A DNA stretch of 64,000 nucleotides from IMG/VR virus record IMGVR_UViG_3300038465_000091, positions 124,001 through 188,000 of that record. One strand, given 5' to 3'. Shown here piece by piece: positions 2,826 to 49,135 of this stretch (positions within the stretch are counted from its first letter, which is position 1; each line of letters begins with the position of its first letter). The notes beneath the pieces were generated by a model. The model was not told the DNA's origin. It was given only the letters and a program-made list of their open reading frames with translations, and searched no databases. A program made the position numbers and the translations under genes.

Positions 2826-2953
2826 AGCATTGTGGTTGGCGTGGCACCCGCTTGAGCTTCTGCATCTCATCCTCGGCTCGATTATCATTCTCTTGATGAT
2901 TGTGATTTCCTATGTGAGAGAGGCCATCGACGAGGCTAAGAAATGACTTTCTG

Positions 2954-3032
2954 TTGCAGCGGTTTCGAGTACCCCGATACGTGCATTGACTGCGGCAACC
3001 CCGGCGGCAACCAAAGGTCGAAACCGCCGCAA
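2954..3032. repeat. 15-bp inverted repeat (one mismatch) upstream of the Pth-like gene promoter
   Basis: TTGCAGCGGTTTCGA (2954-2968) versus TCGAAACCGCCGCAA (3018-3032). Confidence 0.7.
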
Positions 3033-3052
3033 AATAATTAGAAAAATAGTTG

Positions 3053-3080
3053 TTGCAAATTTCTCAACTACTGGTATTAT
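3053..3080 (+). promoter_or_regulatory. Sigma70-like promoter
   Basis: TTGCAA (3053-3058), 16-nt spacer, TATTAT (3075-3080); AGGAG RBS at 3087-3091. Confidence 0.6.
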
Positions 3081-3099
3081 GTCTTTAGGAGCTACTCAA

Positions 3100-3540
3100 A
3101 TGCGTAAGATCGATGAAGGCAACATCACGGGTCTCTAGGTTTCACAGCAGCAACCAGCGTACTTCTTCCTTTTCGTCCGTCAAGACATCTCCCTAGCACA
3201 GCAATTAGTCCAAAGCAACCACGCCACGTTTGAAATGGCGAAGCGTTTGCCGTCCGATTACGATCAAACCCCAAATCTCATCCTTGTCGGCGTGCCCGAT
3301 AAGTCAGCTTTATTCCGTGTTATCAACAAGTTAAATGACAATGCCATCGGCCATGAAGTGTTCTATGAGCCCGATGACAACCTCGGGTTGACCGCAGTCG
3401 CGACCTACCCGCTCACGCAGGAGCAGCGTCGTGCGCTTTCCAACTATCGGTTGTGGAAGTCCGACGTTGCCCCTGCACCACAAACCATCGTGCCGCAATT
3501 CAAAGAACAATTCAAGGAGGCATCAGCCTGTGAAATCTAA
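3100..3540 (+). CDS. Peptidyl-tRNA hydrolase (Pth2-like) with an in-frame amber (TAG) at codon 13
   Basis: RBS + ATG 3100: MRKIDEGNITGL-TAG(3136-3138)-VSQQQPAYFFLFVRQDISLAQQLVQSNHATFEMAKRL... in frame with track ORF 3235..3540. The FVRQD...Q..HA, LILVGVPD and TAVA segments match the PTH2 fold pattern. Confidence 0.75.
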
Positions 3541-4174
3541 AGAACTAATTCGGCTTTTGCAAGAGGAAGACCCGACTGGCGAAACAGAAGTCAGCGTCGG
3601 CAACCACGATATTTTCGAGCTTCGCACGGAGCCCGCATACTGGGACGGCAAGCTGCAACTTTTGATTCGTGATCCAGCGAAAGCTCCGTATTACGACATA
3701 GTGGGCGGCAAGTATTGCACGGCAGGCAGCAAGATCGTCATCAACGCCATGAGCATCAGCGATGTGCTGTGGCAGGACCCTGACGCCACTGTGGACTACT
3801 CGGAACTTGGGCAGTACGCCGACAAGTACCGCGAGGCCGATGAGAAGACACGGCGGGCATCCCGTGACGTGACGCTCAAGGTAGGGATGGACGCCTTCTA
3901 TCGTTGGGTAAAGTCGAAGGCGGAAGCGATTCGCCCGGGTGACACGGATTGCCGCAGCGGAGCGGATTACTTCTTCGAAAAGCATTTGCATGTGGACGAC
4001 CCATTGAAGGAATTGCCGAAACAGAAGCACGTAGATTCGACTGGCAAGGAATACGAATGTTGGCCGAGCGTTAACGACCGCCGTGAGTCAGGTTGGGATG
4101 ATCGCATCGAGGTCTACTGGCGTGGCGGCTGGGGTATCAAGATGAAAGACGGCTCCGCTGTCGAAGGGGAATAA
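3530..4174 (+). CDS. Hypothetical phage protein
   Basis: AGGAGG RBS at 3515-3520, GTG at 3530, in track ORF 3431..4174. Confidence 0.75.
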   Translation: MKSKELIRLLQEEDPTGETEVSVGNHDIFELRTEPAYWDGKLQLLIRDPAKAPYYDIVGGKYCTAGSKIVINAMSISDVLWQDPDATVDYSELGQYADKYREADEKTRRASRDVTLKVGMDAFYRWVKSKAEAIRPGDTDCRSGADYFFEKHLHVDDPLKELPKQKHVDSTGKEYECWPSVNDRRESGWDDRIEVYWRGGWGIKMKDGSAVEGE

Positions 4175-4180
4175 GTTTGC

Positions 4181-4270
4181 GGGCGATAAAAGGCGTCGAG
4201 ATCGTGCTTGCTGGATTGCTACGGCGAGCGTGATTGAAGTGCTGGGTGCTGAAAGGTGCCACGCCCACCA
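4181..4270 (+). ncRNA. CCA-ended tRNA-like RNA A (90 nt; acceptor-like stem, long hairpin, GAAA-capped stem)
   Basis: GGGCG/CGCCC-A-CCA ends; internal hairpin ATCGTGCTTGCT...GGCGAGCGTGAT; 3' half homologous to RNA B (5158-5207). Confidence 0.55.
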
Positions 4271-4271
4271 T

Positions 4272-4353
4272 ACGCGGGTAGCTCAGGTGGAGTTTCAGAG
4301 CGTCGGGACGCAAGTCTCGAAGGTCGGTGGTTCGAGTCCGCCCCCGCGTACCA
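4272..4353 (+). tRNA. tRNA-like RNA T1 whose anticodon loop is replaced by a GCAA tetraloop
   Basis: Acceptor ACGCGGG/CCCGCGT-A-CCA, D stem GCTC/GAGC, T arm GGTGG-TTCGAGT-CCGCC; anticodon arm TCGGGAC-GCAA-GTCTCGA. Confidence 0.8.
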
Positions 4354-4381
4354 AGTTTGCTCTTGAGAGCACTAGCGTTTG

Positions 4382-4389
4382 AGTATTAG
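4382..4389 (+). promoter_or_regulatory. AGTATTAG motif, candidate phage-specific promoter element
   Basis: Identical octamer at 4382, 5559, 9139 and 26745, each a short distance upstream of an ORF start. Confidence 0.4.
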
Positions 4390-4394
4390 ATTGT

Positions 4395-5033
4395 ATGACA
4401 AGAAATTTACTGATTACTGCACCGCCGTTCAAAGTGGAAGCATCAATGAAACAACTGGGTTCCAACTTACGTACAGCACGAATTCGACGCGAACTGACGA
4501 TAAAGCAGGTCGCTGAAAGTATAGGGACAGGACCACGCGCCGTCATGGATGCCGAAAAAGGAAAATCCACCACGGGATTAGTTGTTTACACCGCACTTCT
4601 TTGGAAGTATCTACTATTGGATAAAATGCACGAATTAGCCGATCCCCTTCGAGATGAAATCGGGCTTATCTGTGCCTCTAAGCGGGAACCAAAGCGTGCA
4701 ACACGTGCACGTGGAGTTGAAGAGGTGGGTGTCCCGAGCGTGTATTTTATAGGCGACACAAAGCGAGGCATTGTTAAAATTGGAAAATCCAATAAGCCCG
4801 TCAACCGTTTTGAAAGTCTTCAAGCGGCCAATGCGGGGCCGTTGCAACTATTGGCTGAGCTACCCTTTGAAACGGATCATGCCGCTTGGACCGCCGAAAG
4901 CGAACTGCACGCCAAATACAAATACCTCAATACCCACGGTGAGTGGTTTCGATTGGATTCGAGCCTGAACGAGGAAATTCTGGGTATTCGAGCGCGGAGT
5001 TTAAGGAGAGCAGATTTTGTAAGGCCCGAGTAG
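4395..5033 (+). CDS. XRE-type HTH fused to a T5orf172/MUG113-like GIY-YIG nuclease domain
   Basis: N-terminal LRTARIRRELTIKQVAESIG HTH; C-terminal VYFIG...VKIGKS..P..R...LQ......LQLL...E..LH......HGEWF. Its TAG stop lies inside T2. Confidence 0.75.
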   Translation: MTRNLLITAPPFKVEASMKQLGSNLRTARIRRELTIKQVAESIGTGPRAVMDAEKGKSTTGLVVYTALLWKYLLLDKMHELADPLRDEIGLICASKREPKRATRARGVEEVGVPSVYFIGDTKRGIVKIGKSNKPVNRFESLQAANAGPLQLLAELPFETDHAAWTAESELHAKYKYLNTHGEWFRLDSSLNEEILGIRARSLRRADFVRPE

Positions 5034-5114
5034 CTCAGTGTTAGAGCGCCTGTGCAACGCCCGCAAGGGCTACGCCACAGGAGGTCGGTGGTTCGATTCC
5101 ATCCTCGGGTACCA
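5024..5114 (+). tRNA. tRNA-like RNA T2 with a 21-nt hairpin-containing insert in place of the anticodon loop
   Basis: Acceptor GCCCGAG/CTCGGGT-A-CCA with normal D and T arms; stem CCTGTG/CACAGG encloses CAAC-GCCC-GCAA-GGGC-TACGC. Confidence 0.8.
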
Positions 5115-5157
5115 AGTTTGTATGGCGTAGAAGACGAATGTCTTTTATAAAATACAC

Positions 5158-5207
5158 GGGCGGTAGAGCAGCGCAAGCTGGGTGCCGCAAGGCATCACCG
5201 CCCACCA
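5158..5207 (+). ncRNA. 50-nt CCA-ended tRNA minihelix-like RNA B
   Basis: Perfect 7-bp GGGCGGT/ACCGCCC + ACCA; GGTGCC-GCAA-GGCATC stem at the T-arm position; small GC-GCAA-GC hairpin. Confidence 0.65.
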
Positions 5208-5212
5208 AGTTT

Positions 5213-5361
5213 GGGGAGTTCGCTAGGCGAAAACTTAGTAGGTGATATCGCCGAACGGTCAGTAACCGATAGGTGTGAGGCCAGCGGCGTAGTCGCCTTT
5301 AGCGAGGCTTGGCTGAAAAGCGACGAGACTGCGAGGGGTTCGAATCCTCTACTCCCCACCA
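5213..5361 (+). ncRNA. 149-nt tRNA-like RNA C with an expanded central domain
   Basis: Acceptor GGGGAGT/ACTCCCC-A-CCA; T arm AGGGG-TTCGAAT-CCTCT; internal stems CGGT/ACCG and GTCGC/GCGAC; no 7-nt anticodon loop found. Confidence 0.7.
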
Positions 5362-5384
5362 ATTTTTGTGGTAGAATACATTAT

Positions 5385-5460
5385 GCGCCCGTAGCTTAGC
5401 GGTTAAAAGCAGTCGTCTCTAAAACGATGATCGTCGGTTCGAATCCGACTGGGCGCACCA
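5385..5460 (+). tRNA. Amber suppressor tRNA (anticodon CTA)
   Basis: Canonical 76-nt cloverleaf: GCGCCCG/TGGGCGC-A-CCA; anticodon arm GTCGT-CT-CTA-AA-ACGAT (CTA at 5419-5421); T arm GTCGG-TTCGAAT-CCGAC. Confidence 0.85.
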
Positions 5461-5463
5461 AAT

Positions 5464-5543
5464 GGGCGAGTAGCTCAGTGAAAGAGCGGCTTCCGTTCTA
5501 GAACGGAAGAGGGTCGGTGGTTTAAGTCCATCCTCGCCCACCA
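5464..5543 (+). tRNA. tRNA-like RNA T3 with an extended palindromic anticodon arm
   Basis: Acceptor GGGCGAG/CTCGCCC-A-CCA; the anticodon arm is the perfect 20-nt palindrome CTTCCGTTCTAGAACGGAAG; T loop TTTAAGT. Confidence 0.75.
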
Positions 5544-5622
5544 ATTTCCCCAAACCTCAGTATTAGGTAAGAGCGACCCTAACGGGCGTGTATCAATTTT
5601 CAAGAAACTGAGGAAACGTTCC

Positions 5623-6201
5623 ATGAAAATCCTAAGCTGTGCCCAAGGCTGTCTTAATGGCCTCGACAGACTTGCTCTCGCCTTTGGCTATCTAGCCGAA
5701 CCACCAACCAACAACTCAATTCAAAGCCAGACTGTTTATGAAGTTCATCGCCTCTCCTGTGATGAGTGTGATTCAATTGAACGTAACGTGGGGGGCAACT
5801 GTGAACGCTGCGAAGAAGGTAAAATCCTTGTTCGTCAAGCAGATAACTCGGCTAAGAAAGATCGAGTCAAATATCCGCACTCCGACGAACCTTCAGTGCG
5901 CGGCGAAGTCTGTCAATACGTACTTTTCAATCCGCAAGATTTCTACTACTATCTGTACAACTATGGCAAAGGCTTCTTAAATCATTTTGATCGGGAGACT
6001 CAACAAAAACTTGTTCGTCGGGGCGTCGTCGGATACTTGTGGGGAGCGACCGTGCTGCTGGATCGTGGTGTTCCTCGGGGGTACATCTGCCTCTCACCGG
6101 ACATCCGCGAGAAAGCCCTAACCTCGAAGCAGTCGATCCTGATTGACGGCGGCTTCATAGAACTGAAAAGCATGAAATATACGCTTGAAGATTATGCCTA
6201 A
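5623..6201 (+). CDS. Cys-rich N-terminus fused to a fragment paralogous to the major capsid protein
   Basis: LFNPQD...FDRETQQKLVRRGVVGYLWGATVLLDRGVPRGYICLSPD aligns by eye with FFNPRD...IDRETQRKLLKTGVMGYLWGATLLQSRKVGYGCIYILAD in 46489..47448. Confidence 0.8.
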   Translation: MKILSCAQGCLNGLDRLALAFGYLAEPPTNNSIQSQTVYEVHRLSCDECDSIERNVGGNCERCEEGKILVRQADNSAKKDRVKYPHSDEPSVRGEVCQYVLFNPQDFYYYLYNYGKGFLNHFDRETQQKLVRRGVVGYLWGATVLLDRGVPRGYICLSPDIREKALTSKQSILIDGGFIELKSMKYTLEDYA

Positions 6202-6363
6202 GAAGCCGACATTCGGACAGCAGATGGAAGCGATGCTCGTGCTGGGCTGCGTGGTCTGGCTCGTCATCGGGATCGCCAGTGACGTTTTGAATTTCATCAT
6301 GCGTCACTGGACGATTTTCTCGCCTCTTTCCATTCTCCTTGATTTGGTGGTATATTAAACGAG

Positions 6364-6621
6364 ATGGCAAAAATCAATAAGAAGACCAAGACCTGCGGTA
6401 GCACCACCTGCGTCGGCTGCCTGCCGCCGAAGAAGTTCGTATTCAAGATTGAGGGGAGCTTTGAGCTTCCAGCTTTCTGGACTGCGGACGCCGCCGAAGT
6501 GATACTGACAAAGGCTCTCGATCAGGGGTTGAACCTCATCGTCGAGGGGCGTTGCAGTAATAGCATCGAATACGCCGCTTACGTTTTCGAGGACAAAGAT
6601 GCCGACTCCAGCTTCCGTTGA
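6364..6621 (+). CDS. Hypothetical protein
   Basis: 85-aa ORF; ATG 7 nt after a TATATT box, possibly leaderless. Confidence 0.6.
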   Translation: MAKINKKTKTCGSTTCVGCLPPKKFVFKIEGSFELPAFWTADAAEVILTKALDQGLNLIVEGRCSNSIEYAAYVFEDKDADSSFR

Positions 6622-6713
6622 GATAATGCAGTACGCATAGTCCAAAATTCCTATCGATTCTGATCCATTTTTGGGTATAATAGTCTTTCAGGCTCTTCTA
6701 TAGGGGATACCTT

Positions 6714-7109
6714 ATGCATGGAACTGGCGATGTCTTAGGCGATCTGCTCAAGATCGCGGCAATGAACAAGGCGCAGATCGAGAAGCTCCTTGAACATTGG
6801 CAGATGGTGCAGCAAAAGAACCCCCCATCATCTGGGGAATGGCAAGACGCCTCAAAGCGAATCCACGAATTGGCCGAAATTCAACGACTCGTCACCGATG
6901 CGCTCAAGAACCCTTTTGGGAAGCCCGACTACAAGTTCGTCAACCTCGAAGAGGTCTCCGCTCTTTTCAAGCGTCAGATCGAGCGGCTGGGTTGCACCGA
7001 TGTCAAAATAGCGGCCACTTTGAATCACGACGCTATTGACATCGAAGCTCGCTTTACACCCCCGCCATCCCCAATTGTTATCAGTTTCACGGTTGAACCG
7101 AAGGAGTAA
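6714..7109 (+). CDS. Hypothetical protein
   Basis: 131-aa ORF downstream of a GGTATAAT box at ~6675. Confidence 0.65.
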   Translation: MHGTGDVLGDLLKIAAMNKAQIEKLLEHWQMVQQKNPPSSGEWQDASKRIHELAEIQRLVTDALKNPFGKPDYKFVNLEEVSALFKRQIERLGCTDVKIAATLNHDAIDIEARFTPPPSPIVISFTVEPKE

Positions 7110-7112
7110 CCC

Positions 7113-7325
7113 TTGGTTGAACACCACCACGAACGTTGCCACAGTTGCCATAAGCCGTTCGATCATGAATTGCTGGATTTCTTGTCCTGCGAATTGAATG
7201 AGTGCTACCGCTGCACTATGATCGACGAAAAAGACGCCTTCCGCCGTCTGCGGGAGTTGCGGCGTCGGATAATCGTCGGCAACCTGATGGATAGCGTGCC
7301 GATGGCGACGAAAGCGATCCAATGA
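7113..7325 (+). CDS. Small Cys/His-rich hypothetical protein
   Basis: AAGGAG RBS, TTG start; CxxC...CxxxxCxxC. Confidence 0.55.
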   Translation: MVEHHHERCHSCHKPFDHELLDFLSCELNECYRCTMIDEKDAFRRLRELRRRIIVGNLMDSVPMATKAIQ

Positions 7326-7615
7326 AACCCGATTGGACTCAAATCACCTTCGGCCCGCGTGCTCGCTGGGAACGCCGCGATGGGGCGATTGTGAGATACG
7401 ATGAGTCATCGCCATATCCCAACCCAGCCGTGTCCTCGGCAAAGATGTTCACGGCATGGGAGCCCGATCCTTCCGAGCGGGCGTTATCGATGGAGCGAGG
7501 CCACTGGCGAGTAGCTCAGGACGGGCACAGATTCAAGTTTTCGTTTCCTCGGCGATGGAAGACGGCAGAAGCAGCGATGCGGGCGGTGAACAAAGAATTC
7601 CCCTTTCAAAAATAA
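7322..7615 (+). CDS. Hypothetical protein
   Basis: ATGA overlap; 97 aa. Confidence 0.65.
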   Translation: MKPDWTQITFGPRARWERRDGAIVRYDESSPYPNPAVSSAKMFTAWEPDPSERALSMERGHWRVAQDGHRFKFSFPRRWKTAEAAMRAVNKEFPFQK

Positions 7616-7649
7616 TTTTCAAATTTCTATCGAAAATCTCGACTTCCAT

Positions 7650-7657
7650 GGTATTAT
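7650..7657 (+). promoter_or_regulatory. Extended -10 promoter of the tRNA operon (probably leaderless transcript)
   Basis: TG-G-TATTAT ends at 7657; the leader ATG is 7 nt downstream at 7665 with no SD sequence. Confidence 0.6.
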
Positions 7658-7664
7658 AGTAGAC

Positions 7665-7754
7665 ATGAAGCAGACACTCCAAACTCGAACTACAACGCAA
7701 CAAATTACAATTACGTGCGTGCGGGTCGGCGTGTCTGGTACTCAGGGTGAGTAA
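7665..7754 (+). CDS. Attenuator leader peptide MKQTLQTRTTTQQITITCVRVGVSGTQGE
   Basis: Translated by hand; codons 3-17 contain 7 Thr, 4 Gln and 2 Ile, matching the downstream tRNA species. Confidence 0.8.
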   Translation: MKQTLQTRTTTQQITITCVRVGVSGTQGE

Positions 7755-7785
7755 CCCCTAGAAAAATCAGAGACTTCCGAGCCGC
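7721..7785 (+). promoter_or_regulatory. Putative antiterminator helix
   Basis: GCGGGTCGG (7721-7729) pairs 8/9 with CCGAGCCGC (7777-7785), and GTGTCTGGT (7731-7739) pairs 8/9 with 7766-7774; this would sequester the 5' strand of the terminator. Confidence 0.7.
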
Positions 7786-8050: not shown

Positions 8051-8124
8051 GGACCCGTCTTCCAATGGCAGGATCGGCGACCGATTATCGCTCAATGGTG
8101 GTTCGAATCCATCTGGGTCTACCA
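8051..8124 (+). tRNA. Atypical tRNA-Ile(GAT) (C33, U37)
   Basis: GGACCCG/TGGGTCT-A-CCA; anticodon arm GGCGA-CC-GAT-TA-TCGCT; T loop TTCGAAT. Confidence 0.65.
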
Positions 8125-8368: not shown

Positions 8369-8450
8369 GCTAGCGTGGCACAGTGGCGACTGCAATGGTT
8401 CCGTAAACCATCATACAACACCGGGGGTTCGAGTCCCTTCGCTAGCTCCA
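8369..8450 (+). tRNA. trnT: tRNA-Thr(CGT), with C33 and an enlarged variable loop
   Basis: GCTAGCG/CGCTAGC-T-CCA; ATGGT-TC-CGT-AA-ACCAT. Confidence 0.8.
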
Positions 8451-8895: not shown

Positions 8896-8980
8896 GCTAC
8901 TGTGGCTCAGCGGCGACAGCACCGCACCTGTAATGCGGCGGGGAAACCCCACGGGAGTTCGAGTCTCCCCGGTAGCTCCA
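8896..8980 (+). tRNA. trnT: tRNA-Thr(TGT), with C33 and a GGGG-AAA-CCCC variable arm
   Basis: GCTACTG/CGGTAGC-T-CCA; CCGCA-CC-TGT-AA-TGCGG. Confidence 0.8.
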
Positions 8981-9151: not shown

Positions 9152-9484
9152 ATGGGCTACAAAAACAAAACGGATCAACTAGCAAGCCAACGACGTTGGT
9201 ACAGCAACCATAAAGTTGAAGAGGTCGAACGAGTTCTTCAACGCCGACGTGATTTATACGACTGGCTCCGCAAATTAAAGAGAACTCTTAAGTGCAATCG
9301 GTGTCCCGAGAGTTTTTGGGTATGTTTGGATTTTCATCATACCGATCCAACTGAGAAGGACATGAGTGTGGCGCAGGCTGTTCGCAACGGTTGGAGCAAG
9401 AAACGCATCTTGGCTGAAATTGCCAAATGCGAGGTTCTTTGCAAGAACTGCCACGCGAAAGAGCACGCCAAAATTGGGAAGTAG
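9152..9484 (+). CDS. HNH homing endonuclease between two tRNA-Gln genes
   Basis: CNRC...LDFHH.DP..K......E..KC.VLC.NCH..EH pattern; its TAG stop lies in the following tRNA. Confidence 0.85.
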   Translation: MGYKNKTDQLASQRRWYSNHKVEEVERVLQRRRDLYDWLRKLKRTLKCNRCPESFWVCLDFHHTDPTEKDMSVAQAVRNGWSKKRILAEIAKCEVLCKNCHAKEHAKIGK

Positions 9485-14868: not shown

Positions 14869-16243
14869 ATGATGAAGATCGCGATTGTGGGTAGCGGATA
14901 CGTGGGGCTCGTGGCAGGCGCTTGTTTCGCCGAAATCGGGCACGATGTCGTGCTGGTGGACAACGACCCCAAGAAGTTAGCGGTGCTCAGGGCGGGGCAG
15001 TGCCCCATTCACGAAGAACAATTGCCAGAATTGTTGAAGAAACATTTGGGGCGTAAGCTCACGTTTACTGACAACCTTCATCAGGCGGTGAGCGCAAGCA
15101 AGGCTATTTTCATTGCTGTAGGTACGCCAGACGGTGGTGATGGTAAGGCCGACTTGTCCTATGTCGAAGCTGTAGTCCGATCCATCGCGGGGGCGATTAA
15201 CGACTATAAGGTGATCGTGGAAAAATCCACGGTGCCTGTATTGACAAGTGAAGCCATTCGCCAAACCCTCCTGCTTAACGGAGCGGACCCCACCAAATTT
15301 GACGTAGCGTCGAATCCCGAATTTTTGAAAGAGGGTACGGCGGTCGCCGATTTCCTTCGCCCAGATCGGATTGTGATTGGCACCGACAGTGAGCGAGCCA
15401 TCGGTGTCTTACGGGAAATTTATGCCCCCATGGTCGCCAGTGGCTATCGTTTGATCGAAACCAGCACCAAAAGCGCCGAACTCATCAAGCACGCATCCAA
15501 CGCTTTCCTTGCGATGAAAATCAGTTTCGTCAACGCTGTCGCTTCGGTGTGTGAGCAAGTGGGGGCAGACGTGACGGAAGTTGCCGAGGGCGTTGGCGCG
15601 GATAGTCGTATTGGACCGCAATTCCTCAAGCCGGGTATCGGCTACGGGGGTTCTTGTTTTCCCAAGGACTTGATGGCATTCAAAGCTGTCGCGGAACAGA
15701 ACCATTACAAGATCAGGCTGTTGGAAGAAGTCAGCCATATCAACGGCGATCAACAAAAACGGTTCATGAGCAAAATTCGTGAAGCTCTCTGGACGTTGCG
15801 TGGGAAACGGTTGGCGGTTCTGGGGCCTCGCATTCAAGGGAGGCACGGATGACATCCGTGAATCCCCCGCGATCTCGATCATCCAAACGCTCTTGAAGGA
15901 AGGTTGCCACATCGTGGCGTACGACCCCGCCGCCATGGATAATGCTCGCAAGGCGTTTAATGAGTGCTCGACCACGTGTCCTCATAAATGTGATGGGACT
16001 ATCGAGTACGCAACAGACTCATACGCGGCGGCTCGGAACGCAGACGCTTTGTTGATACTGACGGATTGGCCTGAATTTGTGGAATTGAATTTGGACCAAC
16101 TTGAGTTAAAAAACCCTTTGGTGATCGATGGGCGCAACCTGTACGATCCGAAGGTTATGGCGAATCTTGGGTTTACCTACTACAGCGTAGGTCGCCCCAT
16201 AGTGCGCGGCAAGACACCCGAAAAATTGGCAGCAACCGAATAA
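14869..16243 (+). CDS. ugd: UDP-glucose 6-dehydrogenase, split by a one-base frameshift at the G-run 15822-15825
   Basis: GSGYVG Rossmann motif, VEKSTVP, SNPEFLKEG and GYGGSCFPKD in 14869..15852; (L)GLAFKGGTDDIRES and DGRN in 15779..16243. Removing one G joins them. Confidence 0.9.
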
Positions 16244-29894: not shown

Positions 29895-30617
29895 ATGGTC
29901 GTATATCGCAGAACCAATACGAAAAACGGTAAGGTCTACATTGGAAAGACTACGCGAACCGCAGAAGAGCGGTGGATTGACCTACTCGCCGAAGTAAAGC
30001 GAGGAAGCACCAACCCTGTCCATAATGCTATCCGCAAGTACGGCTCCGAGGTTTTTACGACCGAGATTCTGCACGTCGCGAAAACCTTCGAAGAACTGAA
30101 TGCGATGGAAACCTTCTTCATCATTCTGCACCAATCTCACAAACCTGAAAACGGTTATAACCTAACTTTAGGTGGCGATGGTGCGGCACCGGGGGAATTG
30201 AATCCTATGTGGGGGAAGACGCACACGGATGAAGTGAAGGCTGTGCTGCGAGCACTTCGGTTAGGCACTATCAATAGCCCTGAGTCGAACGAAAAACGTC
30301 GTCAATCCGAATCAGGTGAGAAAAATCCCGCTTATGGGAAAGTCTACATGAACGACAGGGCGGTAGAGGGTCGTAGAAAAGGCGGGTTTTCTCACCTCGG
30401 CAAGAAACGTAGTGCCGCGACTCGGGCAAAAATGAGTCAGTCAGCGAAAGGTAAAAAGTTTAGTACGGAACACTGCTTACATATCAGTCAGGCGAAGTTC
30501 GGTCAGGGCCTCGGTCGAAAGCACACGCCTGAAGCAATTGAGTGTATGCGTGAAATTAAGCGCCAATGGTGGGCGCATCGAAAAGGGGGTATGGACTTAA
30601 GTCCTTTGTTATCATAG
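29895..30617 (+). mobile_element. Free-standing GIY-YIG homing endonuclease with NUMOD3 repeats
   Basis: VVYR.TN.KNGKVYIGKT, AIRKYG, NGYNLTLGGDG, NPMWGKTHTDE. Confidence 0.9.
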
Positions 30618-48196: not shown

Positions 48197-49135
48197 ATGA
48201 AGTTATTCATCTACCTAACCATTAGGTGGGGGCGTCTTGTGATTGTCTACCGCATAACCAACAAAATAAACGGCAAGGTTTATATCGGCAAGACCGTTAA
48301 GCCGCTTACCAGACGTTGGCAACACCACAAAAGAGATGCTCGTGGTGAGAGTCAAGTGTACTTTCATCGCGCTATCCGCAAACACGGTCCGGAATCTTTT
48401 ATAGTTGAGCCTGTCTATGTAGCCAAAACTGAGAAAGAGTTGGCTGCGATGGAGACGTTCTTCATTGTCCTGCATCAGTCTTACAAACCAGAAAATGGCT
48501 ACAACGGAACTCTTGGTGGGGATGGTATCGGACTTCTCACGGACGAAACCCGTCAACGGATGCGTGATGCTAAAACTCCAGAAATTAGGCGTCGTATGAG
48601 TGAGCGGATGATGGGTGTTCCTCTCTCCATAGAGCATTGTAGGCGCATCGGGGATTCGAAACGTGGTGAAAAAAACCCGCATTGGGGCAAACCACGTAGT
48701 GAAGAAACCCGTCGCAGGATTGGGAAGGCTCAATTAGGAAAGAAACTATCCCCCGAGCACCGCGAAAAAATAGGTAAAGCGCACCAAGGAAAGGCACTGT
48801 CAGAAGAACATCGTCTTGCCTTGAGTGAGGCCCATAAAGGGTTGGTGTTCTCCGATGAACACCGCAAAAATCTTAGTCAAGCTCTCTCGGGGGAGCGAAA
48901 CGTTGGGTACGGCACGAAGTGGGTATCCAAAGATTCCGAAACAATCAGGATTCCTTCCCATCTTCTCGATTCTTATGTAGAACAGGGCTGGACGGCGGGA
49001 AGGGCGTCTTTGTTGGGCAAGAAACCACCTAAAGAACGGATTGAGAAGGTGTTGGCGTACTGGACTCCCGAACGTCGAGCACAGCGGTCGGAGGACTATA
49101 CTATGCGACGGGAGAATCAAACACAATGTTCGTAA
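48197..49135 (+). mobile_element. Free-standing GIY-YIG homing endonuclease with NUMOD3 repeats (start probably GTG 48239)
   Basis: IVYRITN.INGKVYIGKT, AIRKHG, NGYN.TLGGDG, repeated H...I..A..G motifs. Confidence 0.9.

Follow-up and report, generated by a model that had tools for sequence, protein, structure and literature searches.

Why should a phage keep genes for transfer RNA (tRNA)-shaped RNAs that have no decoding loop? The question is raised by T1 (4272-4353), T2 (5024-5114) and T3 (5464-5543), three such RNAs encoded on the plus strand of a 64,000-nt stretch of the IMG/VR virus record IMGVR_UViG_3300038465_000091. This stretch, called the window below, is coded on the plus strand and contains few recognisable proteins; the phage contig to which it belongs has 223.5 kb and comes from peat or bog metagenomes. 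The comparison described here indicates that T1-T3 are very probably selected, non-decoding RNAs derived from tRNAs, working through the upper half of the molecule.

Structure and conservation of T1, T2 and T3

A 7-bp acceptor stem, a D arm, a T arm and an encoded A-CCA end are common to T1, T2 and T3. The sequence of T1, which has the acceptor stem ACGCGGG/CCCGCGT, is ACGCGGG-T-A-GCTC...GAGC-G-TCGGGAC-GCAA-GTCTCGA-AGGTC-GGTGG-TTCGAGT-CCGCC-CCCGCGT-A-CCA: its anticodon arm is a 7-bp helix capped by GCAA. T2 has the same body, and its anticodon arm, CCTGTG / CAAC-GCCC-GCAA-GGGC-TACGC / CACAGG, consists of a 6-bp stem, a 4 x 5 internal loop and a GCCC-GCAA-GGGC hairpin. The arm of T3 is a perfect 20-nt palindrome, CTTCCGTTCTAGAACGGAAG, which pairs either as 8 bp with the loop CTAG or as 6 bp with the loop TTCTAGAA.

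All three RNAs were recognised by the Rfam tRNA model RF00005, with scores of 42.0 (T1), 54.4 (T2) and 42.7 (T3) bits against a gathering score of 29. In the Rfam alignment, the seven anticodon-loop positions are replaced by 8 nt in T1, 23 nt in T2 and 11 nt in T3. The canonical arrangement of a 5-bp stem and a 7-nt loop with U33 and a 3-nt anticodon is found in none of them: T1 has 7 bp and a 4-nt loop, T2 a 21-nt insert, and T3 6-8 bp and a 4-8-nt loop. Single-sequence folds gave the cloverleaf body with a closed anticodon arm, at z-scores of -2.4 to -3.3. ARAGORN missed T1, called T2 as 'Arg(acg)' only with an assumed intron, and called T3 as '??? (ctag)' with a four-base anticodon. An earlier note on this DNA had expected such undetermined or pseudo calls, and the positions and features it gave for the three RNAs were all borne out by the sequence, the Rfam scores and the folds. 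It had also considered normal tRNAs altered by mis-assembly. This is unlikely, because identical copies of T1-T3 are present in three independent assemblies (L049, L055 and L065; L numbers denote the loci collected for comparison). A DNA similarity search against deposited phage genomes gave ordinary tRNA matches only.

Relatives of the locus were gathered in two ways: via the protein gene upstream of the RNA array, which is independent of the RNAs, and via a DNA pattern. In a three-sequence alignment of T1 (window, L013 and L017), 69 of the 69 pair cells are paired. The arm is TCGGGAC-GCAA-GTCTCGA in the window, CCGAGGC-GCAA-GCCTCGG in L013 and CCGGGGC-GCAA-GCTTCGG in L017. Both partners have changed in four of the pairs, of which two belong to the new anticodon helix and two to the T stem; one of these double changes sits beside the pair closing the tetraloop, and the GCAA loop itself is invariant. 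The orthologues of T2 have 104 of 104 pair cells paired, and covariation is observed in the inner hairpin (GCCC/GGGC, GGCC/GGCC, GTCC/GGGC and GGCC/GGCT) as well as in two acceptor pairs. These T1 and T2 samples are small and related, and shuffle counts on them are indicative only. In the T3 orthologue (L071 7707-7786), only one arm position is substituted, and a U-A pair there becomes U.G. None of the stem substitutions seen breaks a pair, and the neighbouring protein is only about 59% identical. Since the orthologues keep their stem pairs by compensatory changes, the closed arms are best read as a product of selection, not of decay.

Twelve distinct phage contigs share the acceptor stem of T1, and the caps in this lineage are diverse: 7 bp with GCAA (window, L013 and L017), 6 bp with GCAA (L132), 6 bp with CTCG (L063), 5 bp with CTTG (L135), and a long arm with GTGA (L138). 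Three distant members, L136, L137 and L139, have an ordinary 5-bp stem, and their 7-nt loop, CAGATGA, contains the Ile anticodon GAU together with A33. Since these three still have the GAU loop, T1 is taken to be a paralogue of tRNA-Ile(GAU) that has lost its loop; the three may themselves belong to a class of decoding tRNAs that evade nucleases. The length of the arm varies from 14 to 33 nt in the lineage. Docking of the arm tip anywhere is therefore unlikely, and what is kept seems to be the closure of the arm and the upper half of the molecule.

The pattern scan, which looked for the shared body with an over-long anticodon region, gave 56 viral loci, many of which have extended stems capped by GCAA, GAAA, GAGA or GTGA. 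By eye, GNRA loops make up about half of some 22 independent tetraloop caps, against about 3% expected with equal base use. When the same pattern was applied to cellular genomes (596 Gb), 56 loci were likewise obtained, mostly archaeal intron-bearing tRNAs, tRNA-Ile indel variants, or phage-like contigs in metagenome bins. Thus the capped class seems to be mainly viral, with similar arms in a few candidate-phyla genomes. A few contigs from cellular metagenome-assembled genomes of candidate phyla and Longimicrobiales (L106, L095, L129, L100 and L078) carry tRNA-like genes with this type of body whose anticodon arms are closed or unusual (7 bp with GTCC in one case); these are either true cellular genes or mis-binned phage DNA.

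Compensatory changes in the orthologues and many independent tetraloop-capped lineages uphold what the earlier note had proposed, selection rather than decay and, at its core, non-decoding tRNA mimics; random loop decay lacking compensatory pairing, which it had set against this proposal, is not what the fully kept pairs of the T1 and T2 orthologues display. Pseudogenes are known from phage tRNA arrays, and with ARAGORN an intron can be forced on T2. Decaying tRNA pseudogenes, or an intron-bearing T2, are nevertheless highly improbable, given that all stem substitutions are compensated and that stable tetraloop caps are found in many lineages. The insert of T2 is made up of an internal loop (4 nt/5 nt) and a capped hairpin; it has no bulge-helix-bulge (3-nt bulge, 4-bp helix, 3-nt bulge), and its excision would restore no 7-nt anticodon loop with U33. 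In T1, which has only one extra nucleotide, and in T3 there is nothing to excise.

T3 deserves separate consideration. Only 3 nt separate it from the 3' end of a canonical amber-suppressor tRNA (5385-5460, plus strand, anticodon CTA), which has the extended -10-like sequence TGGTAGAAT ahead of it. The loop context TTCTAG of T3, the same as in the canonical suppressor of a relative (L067 7922), is that of an amber suppressor. T1-T3 are described here as derivatives of phage tRNA genes turned non-decoding. The loop context of T3, the closeness to the suppressor and the four-base anticodon called by ARAGORN might mean that T3 is still a decoding RNA, a conditional amber suppressor or a quadruplet decoder whose loop TTCTAGAA opens from the hairpin; the same might hold for other members whose loops have 8 nt. 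This is very unlikely: the stem has 6-8 bp instead of 5, the arm exceeds by 5 nt the length that decoding geometry allows, the single substitution seen in L071 leaves the extra pair in place as U.G, and T1 and T2 have no candidate anticodon.

Companion RNAs with NCCA ends

T1-T3 are not the only RNAs of this kind in the array. Three further elements on the plus strand, absent from the earlier note, are all conserved in L013, and no Rfam family matched any of them. E0 (4181-4270), which ends 1 nt before T1, is a structured RNA closed by GGGCG/CGCCC in folds, with an ACCA end. In relatives, E0 is a 13-14-bp GNRA-capped hairpin followed by ACCA (L013 5121-5155 and L017 2233-2267); these two orthologues show several compensatory changes, and the cap changes from GAAA to GCAA. 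A mini RNA of 50 nt (5158-5207) has a 7-bp acceptor helix, GGGCGGT/ACCGCCC, with ACCA and two GCAA-capped hairpins inside, and no T loop. Its fold is three-way (z = -3.9), and its L013 orthologue has GTAA for GCAA in one loop. The acceptor stem of the mini RNA belongs to a full capped tRNA-like RNA at L132 6645. The third element, a long RNA of 149 nt (5213-5361), has the acceptor GGGGAGT/ACTCCCC, a T arm, ACCA and a structured insert of about 110 nt.

The same kinds of RNA are carried by the loci that were reached from the protein side only; the smallest is a 20-nt hairpin, GGGGAG-GTAG-CTCCCC-ACCA (L146 2413-2432). An acceptor-type helix and NCCA are the sole features common to T1-T3, E0, the mini RNA, the long RNA and this hairpin. 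It is mainly for this reason that the function is placed at the acceptor/CCA end.

In addition, an inverted repeat, TGCTCTTGAGAGCA, lies right after T1 (4358-4371). It is kept in L013 (about 5247-5260) and L017, where a second, imperfect copy follows (about 5277-5290 in L013). This repeat may be an operator or a processing site.

The PTH2-like gene and its amber codon

The array is preceded on the plus strand by two protein genes. The second, at 3530-4174 with its start placed by alignment, is syntenic in L013, L017, L063, L067, L132 and others. Its product gave no lead from Pfam, PHROGs or the ESM Atlas, and is unlike the product of the gene downstream of PTH2 in phage ME3. The first, at 3100-3540, encodes a protein like the peptidyl-tRNA hydrolases of the PTH2 fold. 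It has a strong Shine-Dalgarno sequence, AGGAG, at 3087-3091, ATG at 3100 and an in-frame TAG at 3136-3138. Ahead of it is a promoter-like site (3053-3080; TTGCAA, 16 nt, TG-n-TATTAT), which is a consensus match only. The open reading frame (ORF) listed as 3235-3540 is the tail of this longer gene.

The identity of the PTH2-like protein was revealed only by a family profile and the predicted fold; Pfam (including PF01981), PHROGs and a direct PDB sequence search gave nothing. The profile matched a peptidyl-tRNA hydrolase in the PDB, 24bt_A, at E = 0.0086. An AlphaFold (AF2) model was obtained with a predicted local distance difference test (pLDDT) value of 84, and the top 13 Foldseek matches to this model were all Pth2 (3erj, 2zv3, 1q7s and 1xty), with a probability of 1.0, E = 4e-6 and template modelling (TM) scores of 0.65-0.73. 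When the protein was aligned with one Pth2 of the PDB, a 2-residue gap was found at the 'tgK' of the latter, and the R-x-D and Q-x-x-H-A motifs were kept. The phage protein may have an activity that differs from that of the canonical enzyme. PTH2 is already known from jumbo phages (PMC7824862).

The in-frame TAG comes 12 codons after the ATG, and the conserved domain begins after it. The first strand and helix of the protein hold the invariant R-x-D and Q-x-x-H-A residues, and there is no ATG, GTG or TTG in this frame before 3235. Therefore, production of the first strand and helix would need read-through of the TAG. The same pattern, an ATG, 1-12 codons, TAG and then the domain, was found in 24 of the 26 distinct genes of the close family, never with TAA or TGA. 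It is present in about 20 metagenomic loci and in the cultured phages ME3 (Acinetobacter, L148), Arash (Salmonella, L149), CBB (Pectobacterium, L150) and RsoM2USA (Ralstonia, L151). The read-through part is therefore testable at the bench.

The L017 clade (including L061) has no TAG and no tRNA(CUA) over a 16.7-kb locus, and its TAG-bearing relatives have one to three tRNA(CUA) each. L142 likewise has neither; the exception is L005, which has no TAG yet carries CTA tRNAs. Most simply, translation of the PTH2-like protein would be licensed by a phage suppressor tRNA. As an alternative, the codons up to the TAG might be a leader mini-ORF followed by re-initiation, but this leaves the constant choice of TAG unexplained. 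Genome-wide recoding of TAG was rejected as the reason for the suppressor: the PTH2-like gene is the one long TAG-joined frame in the 64 kb. The authors of the XacN1 genome paper found no targets for the suppressors of that phage, and XacN1 carries a homologue of the PTH2-like gene. The amber codon of this gene may explain suppressor tRNAs in jumbo phages that are not recoded, which is an old puzzle.

It should be mentioned that the L017 phage, which has neither the TAG in its PTH2 gene nor suppressor tRNAs, carries a tRNA-like gene (2909-3042, corresponding to about 9394-9527 in L061) with an insert of about 65 nt in its anticodon arm. The two hairpin loops of this insert, AATTCTAGAAC and AATACTAGAATA, resemble the loop TTCTAGAA of T3.

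How closely is this gene tied to the capped RNAs? A profile search showed at least 25 distinct contigs in which a PTH2-family ORF has odd tRNA-like genes as neighbours. The gap between them is 11-90 nt in L040, L050, L079, L039, L036 and L020, and the two overlap in L101. With few exceptions, the nearest neighbours of tRNA type are either amber-suppressor tRNAs or elements that are capped or odd, and a tRNA(CUA) follows the gene immediately in 4 of the 7 loci reached from the protein side. This linkage spans very distant, unrelated huge phages.

The capped RNAs might therefore be partners of the PTH2-like protein, acting as its regulator, inhibitor, scaffold or preferred substrate in an RNA-protein module. 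The tight adjacency on the same strand in such distant phages would fit this, as would the fact that PTH2 enzymes act on the ester at the CCA end of tRNA; the two-residue gap at 'tgK' may also point to a non-canonical activity. However, one partner RNA would suffice, and this phage has at least six with different acceptor stems. The order of RNAs and gene varies, and many cultured-phage homologues stand without a capped tRNA-like RNA close by: a simple structural scan showed none beside PTH2 in ME3, Arash, CBB or RsoM2USA. The partner role thus seems rather unlikely.

The same adjacency bears on another possibility, that these disarmed tRNAs are cis-acting processing or stability signals. They would direct RNase P and the maturation of 3' ends on polycistronic transcripts, among them the PTH2 mRNA, and the anticodon would be closed since decoding, for example suppression of stop codons, would be harmful. 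E0 and T1 directly follow a stop codon, the capped elements of other loci lie at the short distances given above, and a scan of the plus strand found no terminator-like site from 3080 to 7779. T3 and the capped elements of L039 and L050 have loops around the stop anticodons CTA or TTA, and the relative without TAG in PTH2 also has no suppressor tRNAs. This role is unlikely all the same: no ORF separates the five elements that stand head to tail at 5024-5543, real tRNAs would do just as well, and T1 is derived from tRNA-Ile, not from a suppressor. Furthermore, the elbow, the core tertiary nucleotides and the encoded CCA are kept beyond the needs of a cleavage signal.

A permuted two-piece transfer-messenger RNA (tmRNA) with tags such as ATAPKAMAAHA lies a few kb upstream of the PTH2-like gene in relatives (L063 5200-5421, L073 2624-2891, L072 2211-2429, L067 3894-4108 and L146 282-553). 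ARAGORN also called a tmRNA in L059, L061, L071 and L132; the equivalent in the window would fall past the left edge. The capped RNAs might then be carriers in ribosome rescue: when charged, anticodon-less tRNAs could take nascent chains at an empty A site or a split 50S subunit, and the PTH2-like enzyme would free the peptide, complementing the phage tmRNA. The position of the PTH2-like gene beside the RNAs fits such a role, for which tmRNA is a precedent as an anticodon-less tRNA-like domain. On the other side, neither G3:U70 nor any other anticodon-independent identity set was seen. Protein scans of the window for tRNA-related partners, which covered about 53 of its ORFs and not all, found no SmpB, aminoacyl-tRNA synthetase, RNA ligase, CCA-adding enzyme or Ro homologue. 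Mini-helices without a T loop would bind EF-Tu poorly. Rescue carriers are thus quite unlikely.

Several other features of the window and its relatives were observed. An extended -10-like motif, TGGTAnnAT or GGGTATAAT, recurs by eye ahead of several genes and the suppressor tRNA (3072-3080, 5368-5377, 6345-6353, 6677-6685 and 7649-7657), and is probably an early or middle promoter type of the phage. The ORF between T1 and T2 (4395-5033) has a helix-turn-helix and a MUG113/T5orf172 (GIY-YIG-like) domain. A mobile insertion is suggested, because L013 and L017 differ in this interval and have instead a tRNA-like RNA of about 150 nt and a tRNA-Lys. Genes for tRNA-Ile(GAU) with C33 in place of the near-universal U33, in the loops CCGATTA or CCGATAA, are found in the window (8051-8124) and at L063 11490, L072 6426 and L073 11000. 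Two tRNA-Thr genes (8369-8450 and 8896-8980) have enlarged variable regions, one of which is an 11-nt GGGG-AAA-CCCC hairpin, unusual for tRNA-Thr. Genes like GIY-YIG/NUMOD3 homing endonucleases lie at 29895-30617 and 48197-49135, and an HNH-like ORF (9152-9484) lies inside the tRNA array. The UDP-glucose dehydrogenase ORF at 14869-15852 has only the N-terminal and central domains, and the next ORF (15779-16243), which is in a different frame, overlaps with it. A gene split in two, a frameshift or an error of assembly might account for this.

Proposed function and related systems

What might RNAs with a kept upper half and a sealed arm do? T1-T3 keep what would be needed for tRNA-like processing and for display of the acceptor end: the acceptor stem, the discriminator base, CCA, the D/T elbow and the core tertiary nucleotides. 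They would presumably be expressed, cut by RNase P and trimmed to CCA. Sealing of the anticodon loop in a stable helix, usually with a GNRA cap, would leave no decoding and no single-stranded loop for nucleases, so as both to prevent miscoding and to remove the favourite target of defence nucleases. Most likely, T1-T3 and the smaller NCCA hairpins would act through the acceptor stem and CCA as mimics, and the leading guess is that they would serve as abundant decoy substrates or competitive inhibitors. Such decoys could lure host enzymes that attack the 3' end, such as tRNA-pyrophosphorylating toxSAS, nucleotidyl-transferase and acetyl-transferase toxins, or those that attack the tRNA body. 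The neighbouring PTH2-type hydrolase would then recycle blocked acyl- or peptidyl-tRNAs. This mechanism is plausible because RNA mini-helices are substrates of FaRel2, a toxin of the tRNA 3' end (preprint 10.1101/2024.07.05.602228), and because a stable anticodon stem inhibits the anticodon nuclease PrrC (PMC3014915).

The comparison shows the structure, its compensated conservation, the descent from tRNA genes and the genomic linkage; the molecular target and any effect on defence are inferred. An acceptor-end mimic acting as a decoy is nonetheless only a tentative possibility, and several points weigh against it. Catalytic toxins would be poorly blocked by a minority substrate unless its affinity were very high. 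Anticodon nucleases mostly recognise the loop that T1-T3 do not have. The acceptor stems differ from one another within one phage, and the linkage to PTH2 fits a partner RNA or a processing signal equally well. In addition, the pattern used on viral sequences demanded the shared body together with an over-long or abnormal anticodon arm, so that the locus frequencies are biased.

The decoy and the PTH2-like gene might also be parts of one module of huge phages directed at the acceptor end, in counter-defence or in rescue; this wider proposal is doubtful. Its first part would be a PTH2-type hydrolase gated by an amber codon that lies two to twelve codons behind the start and is read by the phage suppressor tRNA. 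Its second part would be a graded set of mimics without anticodon, the smallest a 20-nt micro-helix and the largest a tRNA look-alike of full L shape; these would be RNA decoys against host attacks on the translation apparatus, or peptidyl carriers around them. If this is true, the module would be an RNA-based counter-defence or rescue system without a described equivalent.

Of the interpretation given in the earlier note, non-decoding mimics under selection stand and the YrlA idea falls; nuclease-proof decoys, competitors for RelA, T-boxes or EF-Tu, and aminoacyl donors, which it also named, are candidate roles. The context that constrains the function most was missed there: the derivation from tRNA-Ile and suppressor-type tRNAs, the NCCA mini-helices, and the linkage of an amber-gated PTH2 to a suppressor tRNA. 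Phage tRNA genes have so far been read as codon supplements or, recently, as replacements for tRNAs cut by defence systems. A tRNA body selected not to decode would add a third use, since the tool would then be the shape of the tRNA itself or its acceptor end. T1-T3 look like such a phage tool on tRNA ends, apparently not described before: in the full-text literature searched, which leaves out most subscription journals, no description was found of anticodon-capped phage tRNA look-alikes or of an amber-gated PTH2 module.

Among known systems, the phage tRNAs that evade nucleases (eLife 2023, PMC10264068) are likewise located in phage tRNA arrays, and changes of their arm allow escape from host tRNA nucleases. 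They keep the 7-nt loop and the anticodon and replace cleaved host tRNAs in decoding, whereas T1-T3 have no such loop. The T5 tRNAs acting against PARIS and retron defences, as cited elsewhere, belong to the same comparison.

The tRNA-like domain of tmRNA resembles T1-T3 in having an acceptor stem, a T arm and CCA and no anticodon, and phage relatives encode tmRNA. Unlike tmRNA, T1-T3 have no G3:U70 and no mRNA-like part, and they have a full D arm and an anticodon-arm helix. As an identity for T1-T3 themselves, tmRNA was rejected: neither Rfam nor ARAGORN called one in the window, and G-C or C-G stands at pair 3:70. The stable RNAs of the T4 tRNA cluster (species 1 and 2, RNA C and D) are small RNAs co-encoded and co-processed with phage tRNAs. 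They are longer and would be nearer to the 149-nt element than to T1-T3.

YrlA and the bacterial Y RNAs (PMC4201824) are also non-coding mimics of the tRNA elbow and are also found in phages. Their topology is opposite: YrlA ends in a Ro-binding helix on the anticodon side and its 'acceptor' is closed, whereas T1-T3 end at an acceptor stem with CCA. Kinship with Y RNA had been put forward in the earlier note, with an Rfam search for YrlA as its check. The only match to RF02553 had 20.4 bits against a gathering score of 69 (E = 1.1) and lay across the boundary between the suppressor and T3, and no TROVE (Rsr) domain was found among the ORFs scanned, about 53 and not all of those in the window; the identity was rejected. 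The eukaryotic mascRNA and menRNA (PMC9777231) are likewise tRNA-shaped, processed by tRNA enzymes, CCA-receiving and non-decoding. They are, however, products of the 3'-end processing of long transcripts, with no GNRA-capped arm and no phage context. In the FaRel2 work (10.1101/2024.07.05.602228), an acceptor stem with CCA is sufficient for this toxSAS; the mini-helices are synthetic substrates, and no natural decoy is described there.

Taken together, in their possible mechanism T1-T3 seem closest to the phage tRNAs that evade nucleases and to tmRNA with its tRNA-like domain, and in concept they are like the RNA mimics of RNA-based anti-CRISPRs. Should a decoy role be confirmed, T1-T3 would be a tRNA counterpart of these anti-CRISPRs.

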